Below, one piece after another: positions 25,894 through 47,518 of a stretch of DNA of 64,000 bases; position 1 is the first letter of the stretch; each line of letters opens with the position of its first letter. The position numbers were made by a program, and so were the translations under genes. Below the pieces are notes generated by a model. It made no database searches. It was not told the DNA's origin and worked only from the letters and a program-made list of their open reading frames with translations. The DNA lies in the sequence record PP496436.1; one strand, 5' to 3'.

Positions 25894-26222
25894 TATTTGG
25901 TTTCTCCTGCTACTGACTCGATGGCAATGATCTCTGCACCGATGAGCAGGCTCTTCAGCCATTCTTCACCACGTTCCTCTTCGTCCTCGATTCGGACGTC
26001 TCCCATCATAATGAATGGGCAGTCATTGTGCGTCTCGAGCTTGTCAAAGACTGTGTTTACGGCGGCGTCGATAACATCCCAGCCGGTGCAGTTGCCCCCG
26101 ATCTTTACTTGCATCTCGGCGCGAAGCAATCCCGATGCGAAGGTCAATATAACGGTTTGGGTAACCTTGCCGCCGAACATTGCGAGAAAAGATCCGAGCT
26201 GTTCGTGATCATAGTTCAACAT
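25893..26222 (-). CDS. Hypothetical protein
   Basis: 109 aa, translationally coupled to its neighbours. Confidence 0.65.
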   Translation of the reverse strand: MLNYDHEQLGSFLAMFGGKVTQTVILTFASGLLRAEMQVKIGGNCTGWDVIDAAVNTVFDKLETHNDCPFIMMGDVRIEDEEERGEEWLKSLLIGAEIIAIESVAGETK

Positions 26223-27046: not shown

Positions 27047-27051
27047 GACAC

Positions 27052-27384
27052 TTACCTCGAAGGGGCAGGGGATTTGATTGGTGTCACCAGCTTAAGACCG
27101 GTCGAACTGGCATTAAGACGTGGGACCGGGTTGATGGTCATCTTGGTCAACGGTGTCAATCCCAGCACACGGACTACTTCTTCCGGCAGCTCGGCACGCG
27201 TCCACACAACTACGTCTGGAGACACAGTGGACATCACGTAGATGGGCAAGTCATTGATCGCCCGTGCTTCCACTCGGTGCACGGTCTTCAGCCGGTCCAG
27301 TGCTTCTTTGGTCAGAAAGGTGGTGAGTGACTCGACGCTACCCATCCAGGTCATGATGGGGATGTTGCGACTAGTAGAATTCAT
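27052..27384 (-). CDS. Hypothetical protein (paralogue of 24982..25272)
   Basis: 110-aa ORF in the operon. Confidence 0.65.
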   Translation of the reverse strand: MNSTSRNIPIMTWMGSVESLTTFLTKEALDRLKTVHRVEARAINDLPIYVMSTVSPDVVVWTRAELPEEVVRVLGLTPLTKMTINPVPRLNASSTGLKLVTPIKSPAPSR

Positions 27385-33081: not shown

Positions 33082-33113
33082 ATTTACACGAGGCCTATGC
33101 GCGTGGGGTAAAT
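33082..33113. promoter_or_regulatory. Divergent pair of GTAAATG motifs
   Basis: ATTTAC at 33082-33087 faces the helicase. GTAAAT at 33108-33113 faces the modification operon. Confidence 0.5.
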
Positions 33114-33176: not shown

Positions 33177-34655
33177 ATGAAATCTGTAGCCGTTGACTAC
33201 CAAAAGATAGCCAAGGAATGCCAGTGTACCGAGCTGCCTTCTAAGGTAAGAGTTACGCGTGCACGGGTCTATCCAAACTTGAGGACGTGCCTACTCTTCC
33301 TCAAGTACGATGCCAAAGGCGATCTGGTGCAAGCCGAGATCACTGCGCCGTACGACACTTCCACCGAGCCAAAGGTGCGTGTGCTCAAGCACCCGGACAA
33401 GAAGTCCGACTTCCTTTCATTATATAGAGCGCTGATCCGCCATCAGATCATACCCGAGTCTATTCCGAAGAAAGGTAACGGGATTGCACCGACGCTGGAG
33501 GTAATCGGCACACTGGTGAGCCTGCTGCCGGAACGGGATGTCGAAACCTTCCGAACCCTGACCCCGGCCATCCAGACTGGCAGCGTCATGTACGTCCCTC
33601 TGGTTACGTCCCGGCCAATGCCCATGGTGCAACACTGGATACCCGTTGACCAGCATTCAGAGCTGGGCATGATCGAGCTGGTCGATACGGATAGCAAGCC
33701 TTTCCTTAATCAGTGGGTCAACAGGTTGAGCAACACCGCCACCGGTTATGTGATCTACACCCCGGAAGGCTCACACGGTCAGGAACTCGCCTGCTTCCGT
33801 GTGCCCAATGTGCAAGGAGAGGAACTGTGCGTGGTCAAGAAGGTGGACTTCACCCTTACCGTTGCTCGCACCCTCAAGCCGGTACTGACCGTCTCCACCA
33901 AGAGTACGCGTGCCGTATCCCGCATTCCCCTACCCCACTATCTGATGCTGCGCAATCACCACATCAAGGTTGGCACGGTTATTTCCCTGCGGCGTAACGA
34001 CCGAGGTGGGTTGGTGTACCATGAGACGGTGGCAGAGGAAGGGATGACACCTCTGCCACTGTGCCCACATTGCCATAGTGGATCTGTGCTGCGAAGTAGT
34101 AGCAATGACGTGTACTGCAATAACGATTCATGCCGAGGCCTAGCCATCGTGCGACTTCGCTACATCTTGAACAACAAGCTGGACGTCAAGTACCTGAGTC
34201 AGAACAAGGTGACGGCGTTGGTCAACGACAAGCAGGACCTGTTCAGCTTGCTCAAGACACCGACTCACCTATTGCGGCACAGAGCGGGCTTCGGTGCACG
34301 TACGGTGGATGCGCTGGAAGAGAAGCTGAACACTATCGCCGGTCTTCCACTGCACACGCTGGCCGAGATGTCCTGCGCTTTCTACAACGTGGGTGTGCCC
34401 CCGCTGGATGAGATGGTGTTCAAGAAGATCTTTTCCGTGATGTCGCTTGACCACCTGAAAGCACTGCCCTCCACCGGTAAGATGTACAGCCAGTTGCTCG
34501 ACATCGAAGGTATCCGCAACAACCGCGCAGTGGCTTTCCTCGCTGGTTGGCCTGCATTTCAACAGTGGATGATAGATCTTAACGCTGCCCTACAGTCTCG
34601 TAGCGCAATCTCCTCCACGGTAAATAACCCGAAACAAATTCGAGGTGTTAAATGA
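33177..34655 (+). CDS. Degenerate NAD-dependent DNA ligase-like protein lacking the KxDG adenylation motif
   Basis: OB-like VDFTLTVARTLKPVL..IKVGTVISLRR, C4 finger CPHC..VYCNNDSC, HhH-like GFGARTVDAL and IEGIRNNRA. Start re-assigned to ATG 33177 (GGAG RBS). Confidence 0.7.
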   Translation: MKSVAVDYQKIAKECQCTELPSKVRVTRARVYPNLRTCLLFLKYDAKGDLVQAEITAPYDTSTEPKVRVLKHPDKKSDFLSLYRALIRHQIIPESIPKKGNGIAPTLEVIGTLVSLLPERDVETFRTLTPAIQTGSVMYVPLVTSRPMPMVQHWIPVDQHSELGMIELVDTDSKPFLNQWVNRLSNTATGYVIYTPEGSHGQELACFRVPNVQGEELCVVKKVDFTLTVARTLKPVLTVSTKSTRAVSRIPLPHYLMLRNHHIKVGTVISLRRNDRGGLVYHETVAEEGMTPLPLCPHCHSGSVLRSSSNDVYCNNDSCRGLAIVRLRYILNNKLDVKYLSQNKVTALVNDKQDLFSLLKTPTHLLRHRAGFGARTVDALEEKLNTIAGLPLHTLAEMSCAFYNVGVPPLDEMVFKKIFSVMSLDHLKALPSTGKMYSQLLDIEGIRNNRAVAFLAGWPAFQQWMIDLNAALQSRSAISSTVNNPKQIRGVK

Positions 34656-35416
34656 ACAATCAAAACAGAACTCGTATCGCTGTGCTTGTCGGCGGCGGTC
34701 TGGACTCACATGCGTACATGGTATTGAAAGCCGACCAGCCTCAGACAGACTTCATTCATGTGGACTACGGCCAGCGGGTTGCAGTAGCCGAGAGAAACGC
34801 CGTGTTGCAAATGGCTGAGAAGCTGGGCATTGCCCGCAGCCGGGTGTACACGCTGATCTGCAACAAGAAGAATCACATGCGCAAGGTCAATGACGGTGTG
34901 GGTGTGTTGTTTGGCACCGGCCCGGTCGAGATGGACAATGCGTTTGTTAAGGGGCGTAACCTGTTCCTGATTCAGAAGGCCATCGAGCTGGGCTACGGTC
35001 ACGTGCACCTGACGCTGACCCAAGAGCGTGGCCGGATGTTCCCCGATGCCGATCTGGCATTCGTCCAGCTGGTGGACAACCTGATGCACCGCAGTTATGA
35101 CGTGAGGGTGTCCGCACCCTACATCATGGAAGACAAACACCGGGTGATGTTCAAGGCGTATCGGCACTGTCCCGAGTTCATCGATATGTCTTTCACGTGC
35201 TGGGTAGGTCCTTATGTGGAATGCGGAACGTGCCCGCACTGCTACAAGAAGGAAAAGATTCGAGCCGAGATGATCGTTGAGAAGATTGAATACGATCTCA
35301 GCAAGGATGAACGTGAGGCGCAGTGGGAGCAAGTCAAGGCAGGCTACGGCGACGCGTTGAAGCCCGCTGAGACCATCAACATGAACATTCAGGTTGTTGA
35401 CGGGGAAATGAAATGA
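34652..35416 (+). CDS. queC: QueC-like PP-loop ATPase (paralogue 1)
   Basis: GGGLDS, VDYGQR, FVKGRN, FPD, SFTCW..ECGTCPHC. Confidence 0.8.
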   Translation: MNNQNRTRIAVLVGGGLDSHAYMVLKADQPQTDFIHVDYGQRVAVAERNAVLQMAEKLGIARSRVYTLICNKKNHMRKVNDGVGVLFGTGPVEMDNAFVKGRNLFLIQKAIELGYGHVHLTLTQERGRMFPDADLAFVQLVDNLMHRSYDVRVSAPYIMEDKHRVMFKAYRHCPEFIDMSFTCWVGPYVECGTCPHCYKKEKIRAEMIVEKIEYDLSKDEREAQWEQVKAGYGDALKPAETINMNIQVVDGEMK

Positions 35417-36174
35417 ACAAGTTCTTAGGTTGGTTCAAGCGTCTGCTGGGTAAGGAGCAAAAGGCGGTAACGATGACAATGACCGACGCCAGTGGCAAGT
35501 TGGTCACCATTCATATACCTAAAGGTGCTGGGGTTGAGTACACCTTGTCGAAGTCGGGTGCCCACTTGAACGTCTCGGTCAAGGACGACATCTTCGTATT
35601 GAGCACGAACGGTGCTGGAGGCGGTGGGGGTGGCCGCGGTAGATCCAAACCTGGTGGCCCCGTCCATCCGCCCGTGCATCCGCGCCAAACCGTCCCAGTG
35701 GGTCCAGGCGCCCCGAACATGGGTTGCGCTGGGGACGCACCGAGTGGAGCAGGTGTAACGTCGCCAGTGGGCGCTCAAGCTTCGTTCCCTATCGGTGCCC
35801 GAGCCACTGTTTCTGGTGGTGGCCGCGTTGGTGGTCTGGCGGGTGACGGACGGGAACACAGAGAACTCGGAGGTGCACCCGGTCCCGGCGGAGATAGCTT
35901 CGTGCCCTCTCCAATCCGTAGTAGTGACCGAGCCTATCGCATCCGCGGTCTGTACTACGTCATTACGACTCGAAAGCTTACAGGTGAGGAGTACCCGACC
36001 CACGAACTTCTGCACTGGGGCCTTCGAGACATAGAACTCATGGGCAAGTTCTCAACGGTCCGTGAAGCTATCGACGAACTCAAGAGTAAGCTGGGTATCG
36101 TGTTAGACGATATTACGGACTATCAGGTTGACTCCATTCCCAAACGAATGTGCAAACCACCGCACAAATCTTGA
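35413..36174 (+). CDS. Gly/Pro-rich hypothetical protein
   Basis: Amphipathic N-terminus MNKFLGWFKRLLG and GAGGGGGGRGRSKPGG. Overlaps the queC stop. Confidence 0.6.
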   Translation: MNKFLGWFKRLLGKEQKAVTMTMTDASGKLVTIHIPKGAGVEYTLSKSGAHLNVSVKDDIFVLSTNGAGGGGGGRGRSKPGGPVHPPVHPRQTVPVGPGAPNMGCAGDAPSGAGVTSPVGAQASFPIGARATVSGGGRVGGLAGDGREHRELGGAPGPGGDSFVPSPIRSSDRAYRIRGLYYVITTRKLTGEEYPTHELLHWGLRDIELMGKFSTVREAIDELKSKLGIVLDDITDYQVDSIPKRMCKPPHKS

Positions 36175-36212
36175 GCGGGTAAATGGCTCGCAACTAATCC
36201 GGAGACACTAGA

Positions 36213-37031
36213 ATGACCACTACACCCCCGAAGATTCTTGTCGCATTCAGCGCTGGCACAGATTCAACCACTGCGGCCTACTACTATCGCAAGCTCGGCT
36301 ATCAGGTAACGCTGGCCGTGTTCGATGACGGCGCATGCAACGATCCGCTTGACCCTCTGTACGATCCGAACAAGCCGAAGGACTTGACCAACTTCTCGGA
36401 TGAGTTCTACGATTACGTACGGATTCACCAAGAGCATACGGAAGGTCATCTGCAGTTCGACTTCGTGGAGATTCGTTATCCGCAACTCGCATTGCTGGAA
36501 GCCAATAAGACGGCCAAGCCCGGTCGGGACAATGCGGCAGCAGCAGAGGCTGACGGCTTGGGCTTCTGGGTCGGCTTCAAGGGCCTGATGGCAATGTTGC
36601 TGATGAGCCACGGCGCCGCCAATGGTTACGAGGCAGTAGTCTTCGGCCACATGCCGTACAACAACCATTACGAAGATGAGCTGCCCCAGAACTTCGAGCT
36701 GCTGCGTCAGTACATGGTTACGGCCTATGGCAGCCGAGTGGAAATTCCTCAGATCTACCACCCGTTCTATCGACCTAATTTCGATACCAAGGAAAAGGTT
36801 ATTGAGCTGGCGCAGGCAATCGGCGTGCCCTTGCGAGATACCTATTCGTGCCGCCGAGGTGAAGTAGAAACCCGAGGCATCCTCCTGCCACTTCTGCGTG
36901 GCGGTAAATCCAACTACGTGAGCCCCACCTACCGCTGGAAGCATTGCGGTACGTGTGAGAACTGTGTCGAACGCAAGCGAGCCTTCGCGGCGCTGGGCAT
37001 GAAAGATCCTGCCCCTTATATGGAACATTGA
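36213..37031 (+). CDS. queC: QueC-like PP-loop ATPase (paralogue 2)
   Basis: FSAGTDST, HPF...TKEKVI, TYSCRRG, HCGTCENCVERKRAF..GMKDPAPY. Confidence 0.8.
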   Translation: MTTTPPKILVAFSAGTDSTTAAYYYRKLGYQVTLAVFDDGACNDPLDPLYDPNKPKDLTNFSDEFYDYVRIHQEHTEGHLQFDFVEIRYPQLALLEANKTAKPGRDNAAAAEADGLGFWVGFKGLMAMLLMSHGAANGYEAVVFGHMPYNNHYEDELPQNFELLRQYMVTAYGSRVEIPQIYHPFYRPNFDTKEKVIELAQAIGVPLRDTYSCRRGEVETRGILLPLLRGGKSNYVSPTYRWKHCGTCENCVERKRAFAALGMKDPAPYMEH

Positions 37032-37032
37032 T

Positions 37033-38022
37033 ATGGCCCTTTCAACCTGGCCGCTGACCGAAGGTGAACTCGGTCAGGGCCTCGTCAACGAACTGAATCG
37101 TACCAGCAAGGCGCTGGTGAACCGGAGTATGTGGTCTTTGCCATTGCTCCGGCGTTTGTTTTATCGGCGCACCGAGATTGGTGTCCCGGAGCTACTCCAC
37201 GTCTGTACCAGCATTCATCGGGGCAAGACTTACTTCTGCCTGTTGGTGAACTTCCGAGACGTGGTGATGGGCAATCCCGACCAGTATGGCTGGGATCTGG
37301 CGGGCCGCTGGTTGTTCTACGACGTTGACCTGCTGGACACCCCGCCGTTCAAAGCGGTGAAGAAGTCCATTGAGTCCCGTGCCACCAAGACCGAAGTGTC
37401 GTACGGTCAGGCTTTCCTCCCTTACGAGAAGAGTGATGAGGAATACGTCAAGTCCCTCAAGGGCAACTACAAGCCCCACATCTTCGGCGAGAAGTCCAAG
37501 CAGTATCGCGTCTTATCGTACTTCGGGCTGGCAGCGGTAGCCCCCTTCGCTCAAGCTCTGATGTGCTTCGGCATTCAGCGCGCCGAAAGGTTTATGGCCG
37601 AAGGGCAGAACGATGTCCTCCCCGAGTTGTACGACCTGCCACTGCAACTGGCGGGGCTCGGCAATGTCTCGAACACCCGCATCGGCTGCGTGACCATTGA
37701 AGTCGAAGGTACGATGGTAGGTGCTATCAGCATGTATGCTCAAGGTGCACTGGGCGACGCGGACATGCTGTATCTGCACGAGATCCTCATCGACCCGGAC
37801 CCCAAGTGGAAGAGCTTGTCGCTGGCTACTCTGCTGCACATTCATGCCGTCCTGTACTATCGCCGATCCCTCCAGAAAGACATAGTGTTCAACCTGGGCT
37901 ATAACTTCGCCGATGGGTATCAAGGTTACAAGGATGTCTTCCGTCCCAACGCCAACGCCTTCAACGTGTACACCGAGATGGACACCGAGCCCGGCGTACC
38001 ACTGTCCTGTTTCAAGGGGTAA
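37033..38022 (+). CDS. FemAB-like / dupli-GNAT acyltransferase paralogue 1
   Basis: SDEEYVKSLKGNYK, VGAISMY, SLSLATLLHIHAV, FNLGYNFADGYQGYKDVF. Confidence 0.55.
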   Translation: MALSTWPLTEGELGQGLVNELNRTSKALVNRSMWSLPLLRRLFYRRTEIGVPELLHVCTSIHRGKTYFCLLVNFRDVVMGNPDQYGWDLAGRWLFYDVDLLDTPPFKAVKKSIESRATKTEVSYGQAFLPYEKSDEEYVKSLKGNYKPHIFGEKSKQYRVLSYFGLAAVAPFAQALMCFGIQRAERFMAEGQNDVLPELYDLPLQLAGLGNVSNTRIGCVTIEVEGTMVGAISMYAQGALGDADMLYLHEILIDPDPKWKSLSLATLLHIHAVLYYRRSLQKDIVFNLGYNFADGYQGYKDVFRPNANAFNVYTEMDTEPGVPLSCFKG

Positions 38023-38025
38023 GAC

Positions 38026-39027
38026 ATGTACACTCCGTATTCCCAAAACAGCCTTATGCAGTCGATCCCTCTGGATGACCAAGGTACATTCGCCCATCCA
38101 CCGTACACGATGGAAGGAGAGTTCACCGACGTGTGGACGAATCCCAGCCTGTACGGGTTTGTTAGCTTGTTGAACGGTCAGAGCAATAGCCGGGCATATC
38201 GAGACTGGATGACCACCCACAATCTTCCAGCCCTGTTCCTCGGTCCGCACCATGAAGACAACTTCTGGTTTGAATTCAGCACTGGTCTCGATTCCAACTG
38301 CACGCTGGATTACAACGAGATCAACGTCCAAGGCAACCTGCAGGACTTCCTTGGGAGATTGACGTCATCTCGCCGTCGCTCCGTGCTCAAGGCAAAGGAA
38401 ACGGATACAATGATCCACAAGGCAGGCTCGGTAGCCAACTTCAACCTGTATCATCCGGTAGAGGGTAGGCTGTATAGTCTGACCGTGATTCACGAACGCC
38501 GGGTGATGAAAGATATTTCCGAGTTTATCGAATCGAAACTCTGGAGTATGAAGCATACGCCTACTGACCTCACGTACGGTGCATTCACCACTCTGATGGA
38601 CTACATCCGGTTGAAGCAGCGAGATGACACGCCGCTGGGCCACCGGTTGCGCAACGTACAGCTCTTGGTTATCCGAGATGAACGCTCCGGGTTTATCGTG
38701 TCGGTACACCTGGTGGCGATCACCACGTTGAAAGATGAGTCCATGAACCCCATCAAGACGTACATGCACTCCTTCGCACGCATCACTGTTCTCCCTGCAC
38801 GCATCGCCTTACTTGCGTTGATCAAGGCGGTTCAAGAGTTAAACGTCACCAGTCAGTATGCGTCCCGTGCACTGGCGAAGATCGACTATCTTGATGTGAG
38901 CAACGTGGTGCTGTCCGAGCGAGAGCAGTACAAGTCGGACTTCTTCACCGGCAAATGCCAAGTGCGTGCGTGGGCATCCCCGGCGCTGCTGGAACGGCAG
39001 TTACCTTTCGTCACGCCGATCCCGTAA
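38026..39027 (+). CDS. FemAB-like / dupli-GNAT acyltransferase paralogue 2
   Basis: NLQDFLGRLTSSRRRSVLKA ... EQYKSDFF. Confidence 0.45.
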   Translation: MYTPYSQNSLMQSIPLDDQGTFAHPPYTMEGEFTDVWTNPSLYGFVSLLNGQSNSRAYRDWMTTHNLPALFLGPHHEDNFWFEFSTGLDSNCTLDYNEINVQGNLQDFLGRLTSSRRRSVLKAKETDTMIHKAGSVANFNLYHPVEGRLYSLTVIHERRVMKDISEFIESKLWSMKHTPTDLTYGAFTTLMDYIRLKQRDDTPLGHRLRNVQLLVIRDERSGFIVSVHLVAITTLKDESMNPIKTYMHSFARITVLPARIALLALIKAVQELNVTSQYASRALAKIDYLDVSNVVLSEREQYKSDFFTGKCQVRAWASPALLERQLPFVTPIP

Positions 39028-39081
39028 CTCTGTAAATGATGGGAACAGCCCCACCATCACTTCATCTCTAGGGTAGTTCCC

Positions 39082-40134
39082 ATGCAAGACTTCGATAAGA
39101 TAATGATCGATAGTAGTTTGACATCCAATCTGGTGTACGCAGGGTTGGGTAACTTGATCACGCCCCGCGCACTTGACCTGCTGATCGAACATCAGGCTGC
39201 ACTGGAAAACGTATACGCCAATCTGGAAACGGCCTATCAGATTACCCCACCCTTCCCCTGTGAAGCTGCATTCAATTCCCCTGACAAAGATCCTGTGCTG
39301 GTCGCCGACTATCTGAATGCTACTCCCGCCATCCGTTGCGGAGAGCTGGCTGGATTCGAGGCAAAGCCCGGCAGTTACTACCATGCGCCCGCCGCTGGTA
39401 TCTCCCCGGAACATCGCATTGACGTACGTGGTATGTCTTTGCGTGAGTTCGACCACTATCTGGTTGAGCGTAAGGAAGTATCCCGTATCACTACCAATCT
39501 GGTGGCCGACAAGTTCCGCTGTGAGACGCATGTGTACAAAGTGGATGAAGATCATATCCTGATCCATGACGCCGAACGAGTTGGGATCAGCCAGACGGAC
39601 TTCCGCCGCATGTGGGCGCAGACCCGCCGCCGGGAAATCGCTGAAAACTATCTGCAGTACATGCCCATCGAAGATTCCGCCAAGGATGATCAGGTGGTGC
39701 GACTGATCAACGAAGACGTAGCACGGGTGTTCGCCCAGAACGTCGACTACGACCGCATGATTCCGCCCGAGCTGATCTTCGATGGTCAGGGCAAGCCGGT
39801 GCTGACCGTGCTGAAAGATTGCAACGCCAAGGTATTGGGCATTGGTGTGTACGTCATCTACAAGTCAGCTGACCCAGAGCATGACAGCGAACTGCACTGG
39901 CGTGGCGCTTTCTACGATCACGAAGATCCTCGCGTAGCATCCATGGGCATTGAACACGCTCTGGTTGCCAGCGCACTGCACACAGCGTACGCCTGCAACG
40001 CGGTCCTCTATCTGACCAAGGCACCTAAGTCCGTGTGCGACGCATGGAAGACGGAAGTGCACCAAGGTTACGGTCTGGTCCGTAATGCGATGCCGGAACT
40101 GTCTGACACCCCTTACATTCTGGCTATCCAGTAA
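39082..40134 (+). CDS. FemAB/ATE-like dupli-GNAT acyltransferase paralogue 3
   Basis: EFDHYLVE; KVLGIGVY..WRGAFYDHEDPRVASMGIEHAL..VLYL, which resembles the aminoacyl-transferase C-terminal GNAT. Confidence 0.45.
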   Translation: MQDFDKIMIDSSLTSNLVYAGLGNLITPRALDLLIEHQAALENVYANLETAYQITPPFPCEAAFNSPDKDPVLVADYLNATPAIRCGELAGFEAKPGSYYHAPAAGISPEHRIDVRGMSLREFDHYLVERKEVSRITTNLVADKFRCETHVYKVDEDHILIHDAERVGISQTDFRRMWAQTRRREIAENYLQYMPIEDSAKDDQVVRLINEDVARVFAQNVDYDRMIPPELIFDGQGKPVLTVLKDCNAKVLGIGVYVIYKSADPEHDSELHWRGAFYDHEDPRVASMGIEHALVASALHTAYACNAVLYLTKAPKSVCDAWKTEVHQGYGLVRNAMPELSDTPYILAIQ

Positions 40135-40167
40135 ATAGCCGGTAACTCCATCCATTGAGGTACTTCC

Positions 40168-42252
40168 ATGAAATCCGTGAACCCCATCTTCAAACACGTT
40201 CCCCAGTTCGACTGGCCTGTCATTCCCCGTGCGCAGTGGGAAGAGATCATCAAGGGAAAAGAGCATGTGATGTTCGACTCCTTCTCGCAGCTCGCTCAGG
40301 TGCTGGCTATCCCGGTGAGCAGTTACCAGTTCTACTTCGAAGATGGGTCCACGTTGTTCGCCGGTCCCGAAGCAACCTTCACCGCCGCCCCCTATCCGTT
40401 GTATCAGGATCTGGAATTCGTCCTGACCCCGGATGAGACGTTGGTGCCGGGTCTTGCACTGGATACCAAACCGTGGGGCCTGTACACCGACGAATGGGTG
40501 GACAACTACGAAGGTGCGGACAAGGAAGACATCGGCAACAAGACCGGGTTCGAATTCATTCCGCTGTCGGACGCTTTGAAACTGGTGGTCCTCAACACGG
40601 AGACCATGCAGCTCCAGTACACTGCAATCGAGAGCTTCACGTACGACGGCGTGACTTACGTATACCTGCTGGCCGATGGCGTGTGCTGGGTACTGGCGGG
40701 CAAGTCCGGTGGTCTGGTTGCCAGCGAGCATGACAAAGGCGCGGCGTTCATCATGGTGTCCCATCCCGAGTTCGCCGGGTGCAGCGTAGACAACATGTAC
40801 CCAAGTGAGTTCGGTGAAGCGGAAGCGACGTTCTACGTTCAAGACGAGGAACACAATTACCTGGACGCGGCTAACCGCATCTTCGAGGAAGCCAAGGACG
40901 TAGGCGCTGGCACGTTCCTGACCATTGAGACCGGTGATGGATTGCCGACCGCGCTGGCGTACAACCTGCGGTACAGTGATGTGGCCCACGTTAATCTGCC
41001 GATGCACAACATCCACCAGTTCACTTCTCTTCACGTACGACTGGGTGAGACGCCTAACTTCTCCGAGGCCCCGGAAGCGTGCCGCATGAAAGAGGTGATG
41101 GAGTATCTGGCGGACCCTGAGTCCCCGGTAGATCATTACTGGTCGGCCATCATGGTACTGGAGAAGAACTTCCCCGGTTTCGCCGACGCCCTGAAAGACT
41201 CCAGTGTCCCGACCCGTGACATCGTGCACTCCAAACAGGCGTTCAGCTTGGAGATCGATCGCCAGTTCGGCAAGGAAGTGGCAAGCAAGATCGGGCTGAA
41301 CACTGGCGTATTCGCTCAAGTGAAAGACCGTGATGAATGGCTGGTACGCAAACACGAGTTCCCTACCGATAAGGTGGCCGTCAAGTACAACACCAAACAC
41401 TTCATCGGCATCTTCGACAAGGACGAGGTATCGAAGTCCATCAACATGTGGCTGGCTGGTCAACCCGGAGAGTCGCTGATGATCGAAGAGTACTTCGGTG
41501 AGGGCAATCAGGAATTCAACCTGTGCTACGTGATCAACGAAGATTTCGTGCAGCCGACGCTGTTCCTGTGCGAAGTCAACAAGATCCTCGGCAATGACAC
41601 CGGCGGCAAAGGTGGCAACACGCTGGCCTGCCATGATGCTCGTATTAACAAGTACCCTGAGTTCTTCGAGCCGGTCAATAATGCGCTTGCTAACCTGCAT
41701 GAGCACGTGGAAGGTGTGAAGGGCTGGGTTGACCTGAGCTTCATGGTTCGCGACGGTATCCCATACTTCACAGAGTGGTGCATTCGCATCGGCTGCTCCA
41801 ACAACGCCACCATCGTGCGCCAGATGGAGACCCCGCTCGACGTCCTGTTGACTAACGTGGTCAACAAGGTGCATACCGAGCTGTCTTGGAAACACTCCAT
41901 GTCTGTCAGCGTGGACATCTACAGCATGCCGCTATCCGCAGGCAACGACGCCAACATGCAGTTCACCGACTCGCTGACCACTCCGGTAGAGATGGTGTCC
42001 CCGCTCAATCTGGAACTGGCGGCGGAGAGTTTCTTCGACCCGATTGATTCGGCCTGGAACGCGGTGTACGACGGCTACATCGTCGAGGCGTATAATCGCT
42101 ATGGCACCGTCTCGGGGTACTCCACCAACTGGAACTTCGCCTGCAATGCGGCGTATAATCACTTGAAAGATCAGTCGGTGTTGTACGGAGCGTACCGCGA
42201 AGCGCCTGCCCACCATGACCCACTGACTCTGTTCCCTTTCCTCAAGGCGTAA
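40168..42252 (+). CDS. ATP-grasp amide ligase, PurD-like C-terminal half with a long N-terminal region
   Basis: LMIEEYF..QEF..EVNKILGNDTGGKGGNT..GWVDLSFMV..PYFTEWCIRIG aligns with PurD IEEFL..QDHKR..DTGPNTGGMG..VIEFNCRFG. Confidence 0.7.
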   Translation: MKSVNPIFKHVPQFDWPVIPRAQWEEIIKGKEHVMFDSFSQLAQVLAIPVSSYQFYFEDGSTLFAGPEATFTAAPYPLYQDLEFVLTPDETLVPGLALDTKPWGLYTDEWVDNYEGADKEDIGNKTGFEFIPLSDALKLVVLNTETMQLQYTAIESFTYDGVTYVYLLADGVCWVLAGKSGGLVASEHDKGAAFIMVSHPEFAGCSVDNMYPSEFGEAEATFYVQDEEHNYLDAANRIFEEAKDVGAGTFLTIETGDGLPTALAYNLRYSDVAHVNLPMHNIHQFTSLHVRLGETPNFSEAPEACRMKEVMEYLADPESPVDHYWSAIMVLEKNFPGFADALKDSSVPTRDIVHSKQAFSLEIDRQFGKEVASKIGLNTGVFAQVKDRDEWLVRKHEFPTDKVAVKYNTKHFIGIFDKDEVSKSINMWLAGQPGESLMIEEYFGEGNQEFNLCYVINEDFVQPTLFLCEVNKILGNDTGGKGGNTLACHDARINKYPEFFEPVNNALANLHEHVEGVKGWVDLSFMVRDGIPYFTEWCIRIGCSNNATIVRQMETPLDVLLTNVVNKVHTELSWKHSMSVSVDIYSMPLSAGNDANMQFTDSLTTPVEMVSPLNLELAAESFFDPIDSAWNAVYDGYIVEAYNRYGTVSGYSTNWNFACNAAYNHLKDQSVLYGAYREAPAHHDPLTLFPFLKA

Positions 42253-42255
42253 TCC

Positions 42256-43416
42256 ATGAGCACTCCATTCCAAGAGTTCACCCTAGAGGGGTGGATTCAA
42301 CATATGAATCAGGATCAAATCTGGAAGCGGTACGCCAACGATCATCCTAACAGGGTTGAGTTCAGCCCTGTTTGGCGTGACGAGATGTATCGGTTGATGG
42401 TACAGTTCAAAGAGCTGCTGCCGATGTCGTTCTCCAATCCGGTGTACGGCTTCACCGAAGGCTATCTGGAAGGGTTCGGACTCCAGCCCTTCTACGGCGA
42501 TGATCCTTTCAATCCGATGGTTCAGCCTCTTAGCCATCCTCTGGTTCACGTGGGCTTCCCACTCACACTGGACGAGATCGTAGCGAGCGTGCGGGACTGG
42601 CAGTCCCTGAGCGATCACCTGGGGCGTCCGCAACTGGTCGATACATTCGAGCCGGTTTCACTGCTAGCGCGCAACCTGTACGAGCCTAACGCGCTGCTGG
42701 CCGTACGGAACAAGGAAGAGATCGTGATGAACGGGGGCACGCCCGCGAACTACTTCCTCTGGCTGAATAGCCCGGTCACCGAACTCAAAGACGACTTCGA
42801 CGTTTATCTGGCCAGCCTGACCAAGAAGCGCCGCTACAAAGTGAAGCAGGCGTTGGCGACGGTAGGCACCGAAGAGAATCCCCGGATCAGCGTCAGCACC
42901 GGGTCTCGTTTCGGCGAAGGGCTGTTGTCCGATCAGGTGGACAGCATCCTTGCGACGTTCGAAGATCCAGTGGACATCGAGTGCATGCTTCTTCAGTTGC
43001 TATTCGGGGTTGCAACCTGCAATACCCATCCGCATCTTGTCGATCTGGTGTGTGCAGACCAGCAGTTGGGGATCTTCATCAAGCGTAACGGCCACACGAT
43101 GAACTTCCTCTACAACCGCGACCCGGACAACCGCGCTGATTCAGGCATAAACCTGCTTACCCAGTACGTGCGCCATCTGCACATGAACCGACCGGAAGGC
43201 GTTATGTACGTGGACCCGACATGCCGATATCGGCCTGACGAGGACAGTATGAACACCTACAAGCGGGTGATCACCAACGAGAACCGGTATCACCCAATGC
43301 CGTTCGTCTCGGCTGACCCTGCGCACATCGAAGGTGTGCTTACCCCGGCGTTCATTGCAGGCCATTGGCAGATGTCGGCGTCCAACGGACCGGCCAACCC
43401 CGAGATGATGGAGTAA
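42256..43416 (+). CDS. FemAB-like / dupli-GNAT acyltransferase paralogue 4
   Basis: DFDVYLASLTKKRRYKVKQAL ... MNTYKRVI. Confidence 0.6.
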   Translation: MSTPFQEFTLEGWIQHMNQDQIWKRYANDHPNRVEFSPVWRDEMYRLMVQFKELLPMSFSNPVYGFTEGYLEGFGLQPFYGDDPFNPMVQPLSHPLVHVGFPLTLDEIVASVRDWQSLSDHLGRPQLVDTFEPVSLLARNLYEPNALLAVRNKEEIVMNGGTPANYFLWLNSPVTELKDDFDVYLASLTKKRRYKVKQALATVGTEENPRISVSTGSRFGEGLLSDQVDSILATFEDPVDIECMLLQLLFGVATCNTHPHLVDLVCADQQLGIFIKRNGHTMNFLYNRDPDNRADSGINLLTQYVRHLHMNRPEGVMYVDPTCRYRPDEDSMNTYKRVITNENRYHPMPFVSADPAHIEGVLTPAFIAGHWQMSASNGPANPEMME

Positions 43417-43418
43417 CC

Positions 43419-44366
43419 ATGGCAAAGTCCAAAATGAGACGGTTGGCGATCAACCACATCTATGACTTCTACCCGTTGTATCAGGTGATGTACGGGCGTG
43501 GCATGGAGACCAAAGCGTTCGAGGTATCCAAGTTCGCCAAGATGGTTATGGACTTCGAAGCCTCGACCAGTACTCGCCGGAAGTGGGACGTGCTGGAGCC
43601 CTTCAGCGGTATCAGTGAACACGAACACTTCTTCGCTGCGACCGGCCTGAACATCGAGCACTACACCGGCATGGACATTGTGGTTCCAGATGGGGCCACG
43701 AACGTCATTCAAGGGGACATCATCACCGACACCCTTCCGTTTCACGTCAACGCAGTGTTCGCCTTCTACTACAGCTTGCAGAATGTACGGGACGCGGCGA
43801 CCGGCATGCACACGCGGGCCAAGCTGGTGGAGTTCTTCGACAACATCATTGGTCATCTGCAAGTAAATGCGAACAAGAGCCGTATGCCCGCAGTGTTCGC
43901 GTTCCACCTTGACCAGCCTGAAGATCCTAATTACTATCTGACGTCCCGTGCCGACGTTGGAGGTGAACAGTCATGGACTGCACCCGCGTGTGGTCTGCTC
44001 GGGCAGTGGGTCAAGTGCAAGCCGACTGACACTCTGGAAGTCAAGTGCAATCTGGATACCTGGTACAACCGCGTGCAGTGCACAGCGTATGATCAGGCAG
44101 AGGACATTCAGATTCTGGTAAATGGGAAAGTAACCGCTGTCGTAGACATCGAGCAGCCGTTCACCCATCGGGTCTGGACCGAGCATGAGGTCATCGATAT
44201 CCTGCGGGGTCTGGACTACAATCTGCACTTCCACATGTACAACGGCACCCTCTCCAATTACGACTTCTTGATGACCCGGCTGGACGACAAGCCCGTTCCC
44301 GGCGATGAAGAGTCTAATACTAATCAGATGACAACTGATATGTTGGTTGTCGTTAATCCGAGGTAA
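43419..44366 (+). CDS. Class I SAM-dependent methyltransferase-like paralogue 1
   Basis: VLEPFSG, YTGMDI, IQGDI, VFAFYYSL. Start re-assigned to MAKSK. Confidence 0.6.
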   Translation: MAKSKMRRLAINHIYDFYPLYQVMYGRGMETKAFEVSKFAKMVMDFEASTSTRRKWDVLEPFSGISEHEHFFAATGLNIEHYTGMDIVVPDGATNVIQGDIITDTLPFHVNAVFAFYYSLQNVRDAATGMHTRAKLVEFFDNIIGHLQVNANKSRMPAVFAFHLDQPEDPNYYLTSRADVGGEQSWTAPACGLLGQWVKCKPTDTLEVKCNLDTWYNRVQCTAYDQAEDIQILVNGKVTAVVDIEQPFTHRVWTEHEVIDILRGLDYNLHFHMYNGTLSNYDFLMTRLDDKPVPGDEESNTNQMTTDMLVVVNPR

Positions 44367-44368
44367 GC

Positions 44369-45286
44369 ATGGCTAAGCCCAAGGTTCCAACCAAGACGAT
44401 CCCCACGTTGTACCAAGACTGGGGATTGTACAGCGCCATCTGCGAACTGCCGCAGGAGACGATGCTGATGATGTCGCGCTTCGTGGCAGACCGAACCATT
44501 GAGCACGCTGAGCGTATCGATCAGGTAATGGTCGAGATCATGGAACCCTTCAGCGGCCCAATCCCGTATTACGAGCCAGACATCCGCAGCTTCCTGACCC
44601 GCGCTAAGCTTGATCTGTACACGTACGATCACGTCGAATACCTGGATCACGGCAAACTGTCGGAAGACAACGGCATCATCATCGGTGACATTACCACCAT
44701 CGATCTGAAGCAGAAGTACGACGTCATCTACGGCAGTTACGGCAGCTTGGCCTGCCTGCTGCTGGATCAGACGCACAACAAAGCGTACGAGAAGTCGCAC
44801 GCGGCGCTGGTCAACATCCGCAACCACCTGAAACCCAACGGCATCTTCATCCTGAACGCCAACGGGTCCAGTGAGAGCCTACTGAACAACCTGCTGAACT
44901 CCGATGAGCCGGATCAGGAGATTCGCGTTCGTCCGGGATCGCAGCTTGGCAAGAAGTTCGGCATCAAGCCGGACAGCAACGCGCTGCTTCGCTTCACCTA
45001 TCACGTGGAGTACGACCGACGCACCACCTGCACCATGTGCCACTACAGCGATATGGTGCTGTCTGTAAATGGGGTTGACATCCAGCGCTGGGAGGTGGAA
45101 TCCCCGACGTATCTTGCTCCGCTGGACGAACCCGAACTAATTCGAATGGCAGGTATGGCGGGTTTCAATCTGGACAACACTGAGTTCTACGGATTGGACA
45201 CCACCGGTTATCCTGCCTTCTTCAAAATGGATACGGTCTGCGACGGGTCATGGTCACCCGCCGAGTTCGTAGTCTTTCGCACCTAA
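44369..45286 (+). CDS. Class I SAM-dependent methyltransferase paralogue 2
   Basis: IMEPFSG, IGDITTIDLKQKYDVIYGSYGSL, NIRNHLKPNGIFIL, ELIRMAGMAGF..FYG. Confidence 0.75.
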   Translation: MAKPKVPTKTIPTLYQDWGLYSAICELPQETMLMMSRFVADRTIEHAERIDQVMVEIMEPFSGPIPYYEPDIRSFLTRAKLDLYTYDHVEYLDHGKLSEDNGIIIGDITTIDLKQKYDVIYGSYGSLACLLLDQTHNKAYEKSHAALVNIRNHLKPNGIFILNANGSSESLLNNLLNSDEPDQEIRVRPGSQLGKKFGIKPDSNALLRFTYHVEYDRRTTCTMCHYSDMVLSVNGVDIQRWEVESPTYLAPLDEPELIRMAGMAGFNLDNTEFYGLDTTGYPAFFKMDTVCDGSWSPAEFVVFRT

Positions 45287-45296
45287 CGAGGTTCCT

Positions 45297-46532
45297 ATGA
45301 GCGTTATCATCCCCACCGTAGCGATGGAGAGTGGTCAGCCAGACATGATCATTCAAGGCTGTTCCACTGGTCGCGTCTCTATGGCCGAGCCTAACGAGAG
45401 CGCCAAACCCAAGTCTTCCAAGAAGCTGTACGAACGTGAAGACCTGATGGCGTACGACAGCGAGTCGGAGCACTGGCAGAAGCAGTTGGCCCGCCGCTAC
45501 GCTCACCATGGTGAGATGGTCGGTGTGTTGAACAACGTCGAGGTGGTGCCGGAAGCCACCTACCAGAACTTCGACATGAAGATCACTCCGTACACCGCGC
45601 AGTTGATGGATCAGAACGACCCCAACTGCCCGATTCGTCTGCAGTACATGCCGACCAACAAAGAGCTGGAGTCGATTCAGCGTGAAGAGACCATGCACAA
45701 CGAGCTGGGCGAGGAAGAGGACACCGTCCCCGGTACCTCGGTCGTGCACCGCTACCCGCGCCGCGTCTTGTTCCTGACCACCACCCAGTGCGCTAGCTTC
45801 TGCCGTTACTGCACCCGTGCACGCATCGTCTCTCACGGCGGTGAAGCGGCTATCACCAAGAAGCACCTGGACGCCAGCATCGACTACATCGCCTCGAACA
45901 AGGACATAGAAGACGTGTTGCTGTCCGGCGGTGACCCGTTCATCCTGCCAGACAACAAGCTCGACGAGATCCTCGGTCGTATCCGCGCCGAAGCACCTCA
46001 CGTTCGCTTCCTGCGTATTGGTAGCCGACTGCCGGTACAGATGCCGACTCGTATCACTCCAGAGCTGTGCGAGATTCTGGAACGCCACAACGTCAACATG
46101 GTCAACATCCATGTGAACCACCCGAAAGAGGTCACCCCACTGCTGGCCTCCCGGATGAAGATGTTGCGCAAAGCTGGCGTGATGATCGGTAATCAGGCGG
46201 TCCTCCTGAAAGGCGTGAACGACTCCATCGAGGTGATGACCGAGCTGTGCTTGCGCATGGTCGAGATGGGTGTGCGTCCGTACTACGTCTACTCCAACGA
46301 TCCGGTTGCGCAGGCCGCACACTTCACCGTCTCGCTCCGTGATATGCTGGACATCAACGAAGGCATGCGTGGCTTCCTGTCCGGCCCGGCAATGCCCACC
46401 TTCGTGGTGGACGGCGTGGGTGGCTTGGGCAAGATGCCCGTGCAGAAAGAGTATGTGACAGTACTGGGGAGTGGTAAGATCTGGGCCACCAACTTCGAAG
46501 GAATGACCACTCGCATGCCCCATCTGGAGTAA
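45297..46532 (+). CDS. kamA: Lysine 2,3-aminomutase (radical SAM, PLP)
   Basis: HRYPRRVLFL, CASFCRYCTR (CxxxCxxC), LLSGGDP, RIGSR, HVNHPKE, NQAVLLKGVND, PYYVYSND, PTFVVDGVGGLGKMP. Confidence 0.93.
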   Translation: MSVIIPTVAMESGQPDMIIQGCSTGRVSMAEPNESAKPKSSKKLYEREDLMAYDSESEHWQKQLARRYAHHGEMVGVLNNVEVVPEATYQNFDMKITPYTAQLMDQNDPNCPIRLQYMPTNKELESIQREETMHNELGEEEDTVPGTSVVHRYPRRVLFLTTTQCASFCRYCTRARIVSHGGEAAITKKHLDASIDYIASNKDIEDVLLSGGDPFILPDNKLDEILGRIRAEAPHVRFLRIGSRLPVQMPTRITPELCEILERHNVNMVNIHVNHPKEVTPLLASRMKMLRKAGVMIGNQAVLLKGVNDSIEVMTELCLRMVEMGVRPYYVYSNDPVAQAAHFTVSLRDMLDINEGMRGFLSGPAMPTFVVDGVGGLGKMPVQKEYVTVLGSGKIWATNFEGMTTRMPHLE

Positions 46533-46595
46533 GCGGCACAGACACTCCCTAGTTCCAGTGTACAAGCTTCAAACGCCCCATTTGCGCTAGGTCCT

Positions 46596-46682: not shown

Positions 46683-47117
46683 ATGAGCTTCTCCGTAACC
46701 GTAGCTGCACAGACCATCGCTGCCCCCGAGTCGCTGGGTAGCCCGAAAGGCATCAGCGTCCTCGAAGCCAACGAAGGCTTTGCTGTCATTGAATTCCAAC
46801 GTCCTCGCGCCTCGAAGCGTGACCAGATCGCCGTCCCCCGCGTCCAGATCCTTTCCCTGAGCCACGGCAGCGCCGACGGCGACAGCGGTTACCTGATCGC
46901 TCAAGGCATGGCCGGCGTGGCTGACGAATTCGAAGCCGCAAGCTTCACCATCGAAGGCAACGTTGCCACGTTCGTGACCGCTGAAGGCGCCACCATCGAA
47001 ACCGACGCACGTCTGACCCGCATCCTCGCTTACGGCGTGGAAGAAGGCGAAGGCAGCCTGCTGGGCGCGCCGAAGAAGAAAGCTGGCAAAGAAAAAGCAA
47101 GTACCAAGAAGAAGTAA
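46683..47117 (+). CDS. Hypothetical protein with Lys-rich C-terminal tail, probably highly expressed
   Basis: Ends PKKKAGKEKASTKKK. Strong codon bias, GAGG RBS and its own terminator. Confidence 0.75.
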   Translation: MSFSVTVAAQTIAAPESLGSPKGISVLEANEGFAVIEFQRPRASKRDQIAVPRVQILSLSHGSADGDSGYLIAQGMAGVADEFEAASFTIEGNVATFVTAEGATIETDARLTRILAYGVEEGEGSLLGAPKKKAGKEKASTKKK

Positions 47118-47178: not shown

Positions 47179-47197
47179 CGTTATACCGAGGTGTCCC

Positions 47198-47518
47198 ATG
47201 GCTAAAGACAGATTCCTGATCTACTCCAACAAATGCTTAGGGTGTAAACACCTCGTTGATGGAGCCAAGAAGACCTACACTGCTTGTCACTACAGTGTAG
47301 GCAACGAACGCTGCCCCGCGCAGTACGTCCAGATTATTACGGGTGTGGATATCCATGCCTTGGCTACTGAGTTGGCAAACGCCATCAGGGCCAACGATTC
47401 CAAGAAGTACGATCGGGTGAACGCCAAGATCGGTAAATTGGACACTGTGATTGCCAGCAGCGTGAAGCTGGCCGCAGATAACCTAATAGCAGGGGCCGGT
47501 GATGGCGAAGGTAAATAG
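47198..47518 (+). CDS. Hypothetical protein with Cys motifs
   Basis: CLGCKH..CHY..RCP, with GAGG RBS. Confidence 0.65.
   Translation: MAKDRFLIYSNKCLGCKHLVDGAKKTYTACHYSVGNERCPAQYVQIITGVDIHALATELANAIRANDSKKYDRVNAKIGKLDTVIASSVKLAADNLIAGAGDGEGK

Follow-up and report, generated by a model that had tools for sequence, protein, structure and literature searches.

What is made by a phage operon that places two QueC-like ligases, an ATP-grasp enzyme, an aminoacyl-transferase fold and a lysine 2,3-aminomutase side by side, and where does the product end up? The operon in question lies in Pseudomonas phage vB_PpuM-Illi-2 (Illi-2), a P. putida myovirus of 201 kb in the CEPEST collection (PMC7616413). 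Our window is a stretch of 64,000 nucleotides (nt) of its genome, positions 124001-188000 of record PP496436.1, so that a window position equals the record position minus 124000. Twelve genes on the + strand, here g1 to g12, fill positions 33177-46532 (~13 kb) and coincide with the GenBank coding sequences (CDS) Illi2_00183 to Illi2_00194, ten of which carry only the label 'hypothetical protein' in the deposited annotation. They are embedded amid replication genes, with a divergent helicase on one side and topoisomerase II on the other, and the block is 88-100% identical across nine sister P. putida jumbo phages.

We propose, with evenly balanced confidence, that this operon tailors a 7-deazaguanine, either 7-carboxy-7-deazaguanine (CDG) or preQ0, with an amino-acid side chain that contains beta-lysine and is possibly methylated, and that the resulting base replaces guanine in the phage DNA. 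The 7-deazaguanine scaffold taken alone we consider probable. A first-pass annotation of the window had described twelve co-oriented, tightly packed genes with gaps of at most about 55 nt, which agrees with the GenBank CDS: from g1 to g12 the junctions measure, in order, -4, -4, +38, +1, +3, +54, +33, +3, +2, +2 and +10 nt. It had also proposed a ribosome-independent assembly line for a methylated, beta-lysine-containing group. An amide-forming pathway with KamA, ATP-grasp, PP-loop and at least one dupli-GNAT enzyme stands after the present analysis; the methylation is the weakly supported part.

Carboxylate-activating and amine-acylating enzymes

Both genes that had been called QueC-like belong to that family. 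The g2 product matches Pfam QueC with an E-value of 5.6e-19. Its best match in the Protein Data Bank (PDB) is the CBASS protein Cap9 (9NTO, 1.1e-8), with B. subtilis QueC (3BL5) behind at 3.7e-5, and the PADLOC Cap9-type QueC model matches it over the full length of the model (4.3e-18). Set against the canonical QueC signatures of PMC13329287 (SGGxDS, YxQxHxxE, VPxRN, YPDC and a Cys4 zinc site), g2 has GGGLDS, YGQRVAVAE, VKGRN, FPDA and a Cys4 zinc site; the second of these motifs is without the canonical His and is one residue longer, a spacing described for Cap9 (PMC13329287). The substrate-side QueC/CDG-binding signature (YxQ..E, RN, [FY]PD and the zinc site) is retained, and g2 is a candidate CDG-carboxylate:amine ligase or, alternatively, a candidate ADG/preQ0 synthase.

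The g4 product matches Pfam QueC through its C-terminal half (4e-12) and keeps only the P-loop (SAGTDS) and a CGTCxxC zinc site, having lost YxQxHxxE, VPxRN and YPDC. Its orthologs adjoin g2-like genes in contigs L013 and L023 (L numbers denote related loci found elsewhere, treated below). In L014 the g4-like protein of 492 amino acids (aa) has a C-terminal half homologous to g5 (hhalign 72%); because the two are fused in one gene there, g5 is functionally tied to g4. A g5 homolog is also the gene upstream of the ATP-grasp gene in L009, and g5 itself has no matches in Pfam, PHROG or NCBIfam and a probability of at most 0.2% against the g9-family profile. The gene between the two QueC-family genes, g3, had been noted as Gly-rich, in agreement with its Gly/Pro-rich translation; it has no matches in Pfam, PHROG, NCBIfam or PADLOC, is annotated as a CDS in Illi-2 and phage Peetri, and was found in the Pseudomonas lineage only.

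The C-terminal half of g8 matches the PurD model TIGR00877 at 2.4e-7, scoring 29.9 bits against an equivalog cut-off of 288, and the g8 family profile matches the PurD structures 2XCL (1.9e-4) and 2YW2 (5.5e-3) in alignments that span the B and C domains. Residues K402 and K406 (KVAVK), E440 (in an IEEY segment) and E469 and N471 (ExN) are invariant in four lineages, supplying the ATP-binding Lys, the EEY hinge and the ExN Mg site of a PurD-type ATP-grasp core in a protein that is not a PurD equivalog. At the level of these residues the initial assignment of g8 as a PurD-like ATP-grasp enzyme is confirmed. It shares its ATP-grasp subfamily with PurD (glycinamide ribonucleotide synthetase), whose amide joins an amino-acid carboxylate to a nucleotide-linked amine, and differs from it in the ~340-aa N-terminal extension and in a score far under the equivalog cut-off. 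Shorter g8 homologs of the GARS_A type are paired with g9-like genes in L013, L015, L022 and L023. Scans of IMG/VR, JGI metagenomes and GTDB genomes yielded no g8 relatives, and a word-indexed protein search added two clusters for g8 and nothing for g9.

No family match of its own was found for g9, and its relatives number four by word-indexed search versus 84 by exhaustive HMMER search; 7 of 73 match Pfam Acetyltransf_6 (PF13480, best 3.8e-8) and 2 of 73 match FemAB_like (PF04339). An AlphaFold2 model built from the broad-family alignment has a pLDDT of 87.9 and a pTM of 0.89 (an earlier model from five sequences, with a pLDDT of 44.7, gave meaningless Foldseek matches and was discarded). Foldseek comparison of the model with the PDB returns the Sbb17/Sba18 aminoacyl-tRNA-dependent peptide synthases as best match (7.3e-7). 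All of the top 20 are Sbb17/Sba18, A-PGS, L-PGS, MprF or FemX, at a probability of 1.00 and with modest TM-scores of 0.34-0.49; sequence identity to Sbb17/Sba18 is low, at 13-14%, and tandem-GNAT enzymes that use coenzyme A (CoA) sit lower in the list. The modelled tandem-GNAT fold confirms the proposal that g9 is a dupli-GNAT, and its nearest structural neighbours point to aminoacyl-tRNA as the acyl donor, with acyl-CoA as the alternative.

The first-pass annotation had placed g5, g6 and g7 in the same FemAB/dupli-GNAT class, and this did not hold. Against the 73-sequence g9-family profile, g6 gives a weak match (hhalign 44%, E 2.4e-4, 164 co-linear columns that include a common basic 'RRxxxKA' motif) and g7, like g5, reaches a probability of at most 0.2%; neither g6 nor g7 has Pfam, NCBIfam or PHROG matches. 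Paralogy among g5, g6, g7, g9 and a 351-aa Vibrio-phage protein was sought by BLAST and shallow hhalign, both of which came up empty, and the notion of four dupli-GNATs was not accepted. In L010, an ortholog of g6 (37% identity) lies upstream of g7-like and g8-like genes, and the g7 ortholog (29% identity) is directly upstream of the g8-like gene. Of the up to seven genes credited at first with amide-bond formation, g2, g4, g8 and g9 keep that assignment, g6 is a weak candidate, and g5 and g7 find no support.

The last gene, g12, matches Pfam Radical_SAM and LAM_C and aligns with the lysine 2,3-aminomutase (LAM) of C. subterminale (PDB 2A5H) at 4.7e-80. In C. subterminale numbering this alignment retains CxxxCxxC, the lysine-binding residues Arg134, Asp293 and Asp330, and Lys337, which binds pyridoxal phosphate (PLP); Asp293 and Asp330 we take to be the residues that give LAM its lysine specificity. 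The best NCBIfam model is lys_2_3_AblA (1.4e-95). The score passes the KamA subfamily cut-off (274.9 versus 199.2 bits) and falls under the AblA equivalog cut-off (320 versus 525 bits), with the Glu and Arg aminomutase models close behind. On these conserved residues g12 is confirmed as a genuine KamA lysine 2,3-aminomutase and predicted source of beta-lysine, as had been supposed. Its orthologs occur in the corresponding clusters of the Vibrio phages (51% identity) and of L025 (2.5e-161). A KamA-like gene in an uncultured megaphage of 462 kb has none of the cluster genes around it and is uninformative.

The two genes before it, g10 and g11, are paralogs of each other (hhalign 97.3%, E 2e-11). 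Weak matches of g11 to Pfam Methyltransf_31 (0.034) and an NCBIfam daptide methyltransferase (0.025) both cover residues ~102-175, and g10 has none. The invariant positions of g10 (E60..G64, D86 and G99-D100) appear, as judged by eye, to follow the motif I/II/III order of methyltransferases that use S-adenosylmethionine (SAM). Orthologs of g10 occur in L009, L013, L014, L022 and L023, so that the gene is kept beside g8 and g9 in other lineages; an ortholog fragment of g11 was found in L009.

Related clusters and the deazaguanine scaffold

Genes that the first-pass annotation expected to travel together are syntenic, not scattered, in distant relatives. Vibrio coralliilyticus phages GR11A and GR7B (~200 kb) have the same helicase-to-topoisomerase neighbourhood as Illi-2, and their cluster runs LigA-like, ArcS-like, canonical QueC, second QueC, unknown, g9 ortholog, g8 ortholog, KamA and small GNAT. 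The canonical QueC (QueCa) reaches 4.7e-59 and carries all five canonical motifs, and the ArcS-core protein matches DUF5591 (3.3e-7) and ArcS alpha (9.3e-11).

In archaea, ArcS links lysine to the preQ0 nitrile, and the free preQ0 nucleoside and its 5'-monophosphate also serve as its substrates (PMC11298593). Archaeosine synthesis by ArcS and RaSEA (PMC11298593) is thereby a chemical parallel, as a lysine amine is joined to the 7-substituent of a 7-deazaguanine, and the Vibrio-phage cluster likewise has an ArcS-core (DUF5591) protein beside a radical-SAM enzyme. The parallel ends there: the radical-SAM enzyme of the phages is not RaSEA but a KamA whose PLP and lysine sites are intact, Illi-2 is without an ArcS-like gene, and a phage lysyl adduct would be kept and extended, not cleaved to archaeosine. 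KamA as a substitute for RaSEA was considered and judged unlikely, given that its PLP- and lysine-binding residues are intact.

Further contigs keep the ligase genes together in other arrangements. L013 (167 kb, phage-like) has QueE-like, g2-like, g4-like, unknown, g9-like, GARS_A ATP-grasp and g10-like genes; L015 (182 kb) has a Gat-QueC and, further on, a g9-like gene with an ATP-grasp gene; L023 has three QueC genes, an unknown, ATP-grasp, g9-like and g10-like; and in L014 the g4-g5 fusion is accompanied by g8-like, g10-like and g9-like genes. The order is g5-like, g8, g9, g10, g11 in L009 and g6, g7, g8, g9 in L010, and L025 has two g9-like genes, a g8-like gene and KamA. The ATP-grasp and g9 pair adjoins QueC-family genes in no fewer than four other phage-like contigs and KamA in one more. 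The g8/g9/g10 module directly borders QueC-family genes in five or more separate contigs or lineages, among which QueC types and gene orders differ. The recurrent core is one or more QueC-family genes, the ATP-grasp gene, the dupli-GNAT gene and the g10-like gene; KamA, the ArcS-like gene, g3 and g5-g7 are lineage-specific additions. Beside the g9-like/ATP-grasp module of L015 (6335-8283), L022 (1-1910) and L025 (1-1938) we also observed a conserved pair formed by a ~350-aa unknown protein and a GFO/IDH/MocA-type oxidoreductase, which is absent from Illi-2; all three of these phage-like contigs are metagenomic.

The genes for early deazaguanine synthesis lie outside the window. At record positions 192957-196637, Illi-2 encodes FolE (PF01227, 3.8e-39) and a QueE-like radical-SAM protein (phrog_2076, 1.6e-42; phage 9g QueE, 7.6e-9). 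These two genes flank the sliding clamp, next to the DNA polymerase, in a layout that resembles that of phage 9g, the prototype dG+ phage, and Vibrio phage GR11A has the same arrangement of QueE, clamp and FolE. The precursor gene set of Illi-2 consists of FolE, the QueE-like gene and the two non-canonical QueC-family genes; it is the combination of FolE, QueE and QueC-family enzymes that defines 7-deazaguanine synthesis. Together, FolE and QueE outside the window and the canonical QueC and ArcS-like genes of the Vibrio-phage cluster make the evidence converge on a 7-deazaguanine scaffold. The first-pass annotation had left the target open among DNA, protein, tRNA and a small molecule; on the present evidence the target is not open-ended, and DNA is the likeliest destination.

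Some neighbours of these genes were also considered. The 408-aa gene between QueE and FolE was rejected as DpdA, since it is the sliding clamp, and the 129-aa and 114-aa neighbours were rejected as QueD, since they have no HGH motif and the 114-aa protein is membrane-protein-like. The 193-aa protein encoded after FolE (phrog_17451, record positions 196647-197228) has a homolog (1.9e-12) three genes downstream of KamA in L025 and may be a further pathway component. At locus L003, outside the window, a 384-aa thymidylate-synthase homolog with large insertions (25956-27110), an HD-domain 5'-deoxynucleotidase (41864-42427) and a 370-aa dUTPase_2/MazG-like pyrophosphohydrolase (47195-48307) are encoded. 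Such a set of thymidylate synthase, deoxynucleotidase and dUTPase is common in phages that replace a canonical base.

Destination of the product

DNA is favoured as the destination on three grounds: the phage 7-deazaguanine systems in the literature consulted modify DNA (PMC6884629, PMC10516641), the operon lies amid replication genes with which it shares a GTAAATG element, and LigA-type DNA-binding modules are kept in g1. Residues 295-395 of g1 match TIGR00575 LigA (1.3e-6), the PDB ligase 8AK4 aligns with residues 226-351, and the Vibrio ortholog matches Pfam DNA_ligase_OB (6.5e-8) and HHH_5. The LigA oligonucleotide-binding (OB) fold, Cys4 zinc finger and helix-hairpin-helix (HhH) modules are present. 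No nucleotidyltransferase domain match was found for g1, and the catalytic KxDG lysine is not conserved: where g1 has its sole candidate motif-I lysine (KYDA), both Vibrio orthologs have Val (VYDN and VYEA). A bona fide NAD-dependent ligase is encoded elsewhere in Illi-2. The lead gene had been called a dead LigA, which fits these observations, and had also been cited as clamp-like in support of a DNA target, which does not, as g1 is LigA-like; its product is probably a DNA-binding, non-ligating component.

Sharing of GTAAAT motifs with the helicase had been offered as a second argument for DNA. Copies do lie 30-90 nt upstream of g1, g2, g4, g7, g8, g13 (a small gene after KamA) and the divergent helicase, in the extended form GTAAATG(g/a), and the motif occurs to either side of the divergent junction between helicase and g1. 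The window holds 21 copies of GTAAAT where 14.2 +/- 4 are expected, and 8 of 100 shuffles attain that count, which amounts to no overall enrichment. Illi-2 encodes its own sigma factor, and GTAAATG looks like a phage-specific promoter class. We rejected the motif by itself as evidence for a DNA target because it is not enriched overall and has the appearance of a general promoter element.

The analysis establishes the enzyme families, the conservation of their catalytic residues and their repeated co-localisation; from these we infer the following scheme, including its substrates, order of steps, methylation and destination. FolE and QueE of the phage, together with host QueD, would make CDG. 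The g2 enzyme would adenylate the CDG carboxylate and couple it to an amine or ammonia, and g4, fused to g5 in a relative, would perform a second PP-loop activation. With all residues known to be needed in place, g12 would convert L-lysine to beta-lysine. The ATP-grasp enzyme g8 could then ligate the carboxylate of an amino acid to an amine of the growing side chain, and g9 could add an aminoacyl group from host aminoacyl-tRNA, as g6 may do likewise; for g8 and g9 the folds are established and the substrates presumed. The product might be methylated by g10 and g11, and g1 might tether the chemistry to DNA. In the Vibrio-phage version, canonical QueC would make preQ0 and the ArcS-like protein would attach a lysine-type amine to its nitrile, as archaeal ArcS does. 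More tentatively, we suggest a specific end point: a cationic 7-deazaguanine in DNA that bears a beta-lysyl or short peptidyl chain derived partly from host aminoacyl-tRNAs and that is installed without DpdA, for example as a nucleotide or by a new DNA-directed enzyme such as the dead ligase g1.

Several findings weigh against a DNA-directed deazaguanine pathway of this kind. No DpdA or other TGT-family gene is annotated in the record, and sequence-level searches of the Illi-2 open reading frames (ORFs) by phmmer with phiST DpdA3 and 9g DpdA (DpdA1) and with a four-sequence DpdA3 hidden Markov model returned nothing below E = 0.1 on any ORF; DpdA has been called the signature of 7-deazaguanine DNA modification (PMC10516641). 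QueD was not found in Illi-2 by sequence-level searches either, and could be supplied by the host. Because DpdA was not detected and QueD is also missing, we place the DNA-directed model no higher than even. Neither an ArcS-like gene nor a canonical QueC is present in Illi-2 itself, g2 and g4 both departing from the canonical motif set. At the syntenic position, L013, L015 and L023 have no KamA, and beta-lysine is therefore accessory to the core module and not part of it. In a bacterial metagenome-assembled genome (MAG; GCA_016124835.1, contig WGMY01000024.1, 4682-11030; L024), a g9-like dupli-GNAT gene stands with genes for an Orn/Arg decarboxylase, a GNAT, a RimK-type ATP-grasp enzyme, a deoxyhypusine-synthase-like enzyme and an agmatinase, in what looks like an uncharacterised aminoacyl-polyamine pathway; this polyamine context suggests that the g8/g9 pair is a general amine-acylating module and not specific to deazaguanine. 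For g10 and g11, whose family profile drew an empty search of the PDB, a class I methyltransferase-like nature is weakly supported, and their first-pass description as two methyltransferases did not hold at that strength. Sequence and profile searches assigned no fold to g5, g6 or g7. The DNA of G3 jumbo phages bound poorly to one purification kit (PMC7616413), which is anecdotal as a sign of modification.

That no inserting enzyme was found fits a diffusible product, a free peptidyl- or beta-lysyl-7-deazaguanine base or nucleoside that inhibits a host process or defence and never enters a polymer. Peptidyl-nucleoside natural products typically involve beta-lysine, ATP-grasp ligases and methyltransferases, and the bacterial homolog in L024 has a small-molecule polyamine context. 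The best structural match of g9, Sbb17/Sba18, belongs to the biosynthesis of streptothricin-type antibiotics, and in the streptothricin/BD-12 pathways a heterocycle-core amine is acylated with beta-lysine or a tRNA-delivered amino acid; there, however, the core is streptothrisamine in place of a 7-deazaguanine and the genes form an actinomycete cluster in place of a phage operon. We consider a diffusible product unlikely, in view of the LigA DNA-binding modules kept in g1, the position of the operon inside the replication module of several large phage genomes and the tie, in the literature consulted, of phage FolE, QueE and QueC sets to DNA modification (PMC6884629, PMC10516641). At a similar level, if anything slightly lower, we place protein deazaguanylation, in which QueC-family enzymes would attach CDG to the N terminus or a lysine of a phage or host protein and the ligases would build or extend a peptide handle, for instance activating a phage protein or jamming a host defence. 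Cap9 of type IV CBASS and QatC of QatABCD are QueC-fold enzymes that use ATP to link the carboxylate of CDG, through an amide bond, to amines that are not ammonia (10.1101/2025.04.06.647259; PMC13329287). Cap9 is the closest solved relative of g2, which shares its conserved core and lost His, and the active site of g4 is remodelled as in QatC; the failure to find DpdA and the place of Gly-rich g3 between the two QueC genes would suit this reading too. Those enzymes, however, serve bacterial defence and act on the N terminus of a partner protein, and PADLOC, Pfam and PHROG scans of the operon found no Cap10/TGT-like, CD-NTase, QatA, QatB or QatD partner; the amine predicted for the operon is an amino acid. 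Moreover, none of the other lineages with the core genes has g3, the canonical QueC and ArcS-like genes of the Vibrio phages point to nucleobase or nucleoside chemistry, and the nearest structural matches of g9 act on small-molecule and lipid amines, not on proteins.

The operon might also combine two modules that are neighbours by descent, with the QueC genes serving an ordinary dADG- or dPreQ0-type modification and KamA, the ATP-grasp, GNAT and methyltransferase-like genes directed at a different amine, for instance that of a polyamine, cell-wall precursor or protein. The pairing of g9-like and ATP-grasp genes with polyamine genes in the bacterial MAG would agree with this, and some of the synteny between Illi-2 and the Vibrio phages is inherited, given their overall relatedness. 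It is nevertheless improbable: the QueC-family genes recur against the g8/g9/g10 module in the separate lineages listed above, the g4-g5 fusion stands directly upstream of the g8-like gene in L014, and operon genes overlap or lie 1-3 nt apart. Least probable of all is a tRNA modification that retunes translation, either as a new queuosine-like base inserted by host TGT or as queuosine (Q) that is aminoacylated in tRNA. A Pseudomonas host has the full Q pathway and TGT, phage DpdA would not be required, 7-deazaguanines and ArcS are natively tRNA chemistry, and glutamyl-Q is a precedent for an amino-acid-bearing Q. Bacterial TGT, on the other hand, is selective for preQ1, Illi-2 encodes no tRNAs, the neighbourhood consists of DNA replication genes, and an investment of twelve genes plus FolE and QueE fits bulk modification of DNA better.

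Amino-acid-derived cationic decoration of phage DNA bases has a parallel in thymidine hypermodification, in which amino acids or polyamines are appended to 5-hydroxymethyldeoxyuridine (5-hmdU) after replication by kinase and pyrophosphate-displacement chemistry, giving positively charged groups; the base there is T and not G, and the Illi-2 operon has PP-loop, ATP-grasp and aminoacyl-tRNA ligases instead. Known phage 7-deazaguanine DNA modifications number eight (dPreQ0, dADG, dG+, dPreQ1, mdPreQ1, fdPreQ1, dCDG and dDG), with the substituents H, COOH, amide, nitrile, amidine, aminomethyl and the N-methyl and N-formyl forms of the last (PMC6884629, PMC10516641). Tailoring of the 7-substituent has precedents in DpdM, a proposed methylase, and DpdN, a proposed formylase (PMC6884629, PMC10516641). 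With these Dpd-type systems the Illi-2 locus and its relatives have in common FolE, QueE and QueC-family genes near polymerase and clamp, an ArcS-like gene in the Vibrio version and Gat-QueC in L015. They differ in that Illi-2 is without a detected DpdA of any tested subfamily, canonical QueC or QueD, and in the added genes, for KamA, a PurD-like ATP-grasp enzyme, dupli-GNATs of the aminoacyl-tRNA type and two methyltransferase-like proteins, of which the 7-deazaguanine literature searched makes no mention; the side chain predicted for the operon, an amino acid or peptide, is far larger than those of known derivatives. A genomic overview of jumbo phages goes no further than to note that some of them have a subset of the deazaguanine enzymes.

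The kind of system, phage 7-deazaguanine modification, is known, and the tailoring enzymes are unprecedented: in the literature searched we found no published description that combines 7-deazaguanine with an aminomutase, an ATP-grasp enzyme or beta-lysine, in agreement with the first-pass view that no such combination had been described. Should the proposed DNA base exist, it would set two precedents, an amino acid carried by a purine in DNA and aminoacyl-tRNA employed to modify DNA bases, and its aminoacyl or beta-lysyl chain would make it a new and much bulkier chemical class of DNA base. It would link QueC-type ligases, PurD-like ATP-grasp ligases and tRNA-dependent Fem-type transferases, none of them previously connected to DNA modification, and it bears on whether DpdA is universal for 7-deazaguanine DNA. 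Such a base would be expected to block restriction enzymes and CRISPR nucleases and might be a target of modification-dependent defences. The phages are cultured on derivatives of P. putida KT2440/PaW85, a safe laboratory host. In wild-type P. putida, the resident prophages restrict the G3 jumbo phages, Illi-2 among them, by a factor of more than 1000 (PMC7616413), and this restriction and the poor kit binding would be worth revisiting if the DNA is hypermodified.

Coordinates and neighbouring features

Table 1. Operon genes, GTAAATG copies and neighbouring features in the window
Feature	Position	Strand	Description
g1	33177..34655	+	LigA-like; OB fold, Cys4 zinc finger, helix-hairpin-helix; degenerate nucleotidyltransferase half
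g2	34652..35416	+	Non-canonical QueC-family PP-loop ATPase
g3	35413..36174	+	Gly/Pro-rich protein; Pseudomonas lineage only
g4	36213..37031	+	Remodelled QueC-family PP-loop enzyme
g5	37033..38022	+	No family assigned; tied to g4 via gene fusion in a relative
g6	38026..39027	+	Weak candidate FemAB-like GNAT
g7	39082..40134	+	No family assigned; kept beside ATP-grasp gene
g8	40168..42252	+	PurD-like ATP-grasp (C-terminal ~350 aa) with N-terminal extension of ~340 aa
g9	42256..43416	+	Dupli-GNAT; predicted fold of aminoacyl-tRNA-dependent aminoacyl transferases
g10	43419..44366	+	Paralog of g11; methyltransferase-like, weak evidence
g11	44369..45286	+	Paralog of g10; methyltransferase-like, weak evidence
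g12	45297..46532	+	KamA-family radical-SAM, PLP-dependent lysine 2,3-aminomutase
g13	46683-47117	+	Small protein between KamA and topoisomerase II
g14	47198-47518	+	Small protein between KamA and topoisomerase II
Illi2_00170	26222-27046	-	274-aa GNAT acetyltransferase
GTAAATG copies	33108 (33108..33113), 34620, 36179, 39032, 40131, 46596	+	
GTAAATG copy	33082	-	
Further GTAAATG copies	47433, 47511, 49532, 62965, 8257; 22029 (-), 28626 (-)		
Antisense frame	39865-41895	-	Opposite g8; rejected as a gene
Antisense frame	45222-46565	-	Opposite g12; rejected as a gene

The GNAT acetyltransferase Illi2_00170 (RimI-like, 3e-7) lies ~6 kb upstream of the operon on the opposite strand. In the Vibrio phages the small GNAT gene follows KamA directly, as in the AblA/AblB pair that makes N-acetyl-beta-lysine. 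The small proteins g13 and g14 occupy the same position in the Vibrio phages, with 35-39% identity, and could be part of either the operon or the replication module.

On the antisense strand, very long frames without stop codons lie across from g8 (588 codons, and 695 in phage Peetri) and g12 (412 codons). They were rejected as genes because they are not kept in lower-GC relatives outside the GC-rich Pseudomonas lineage, and are most likely an artefact of codon bias.

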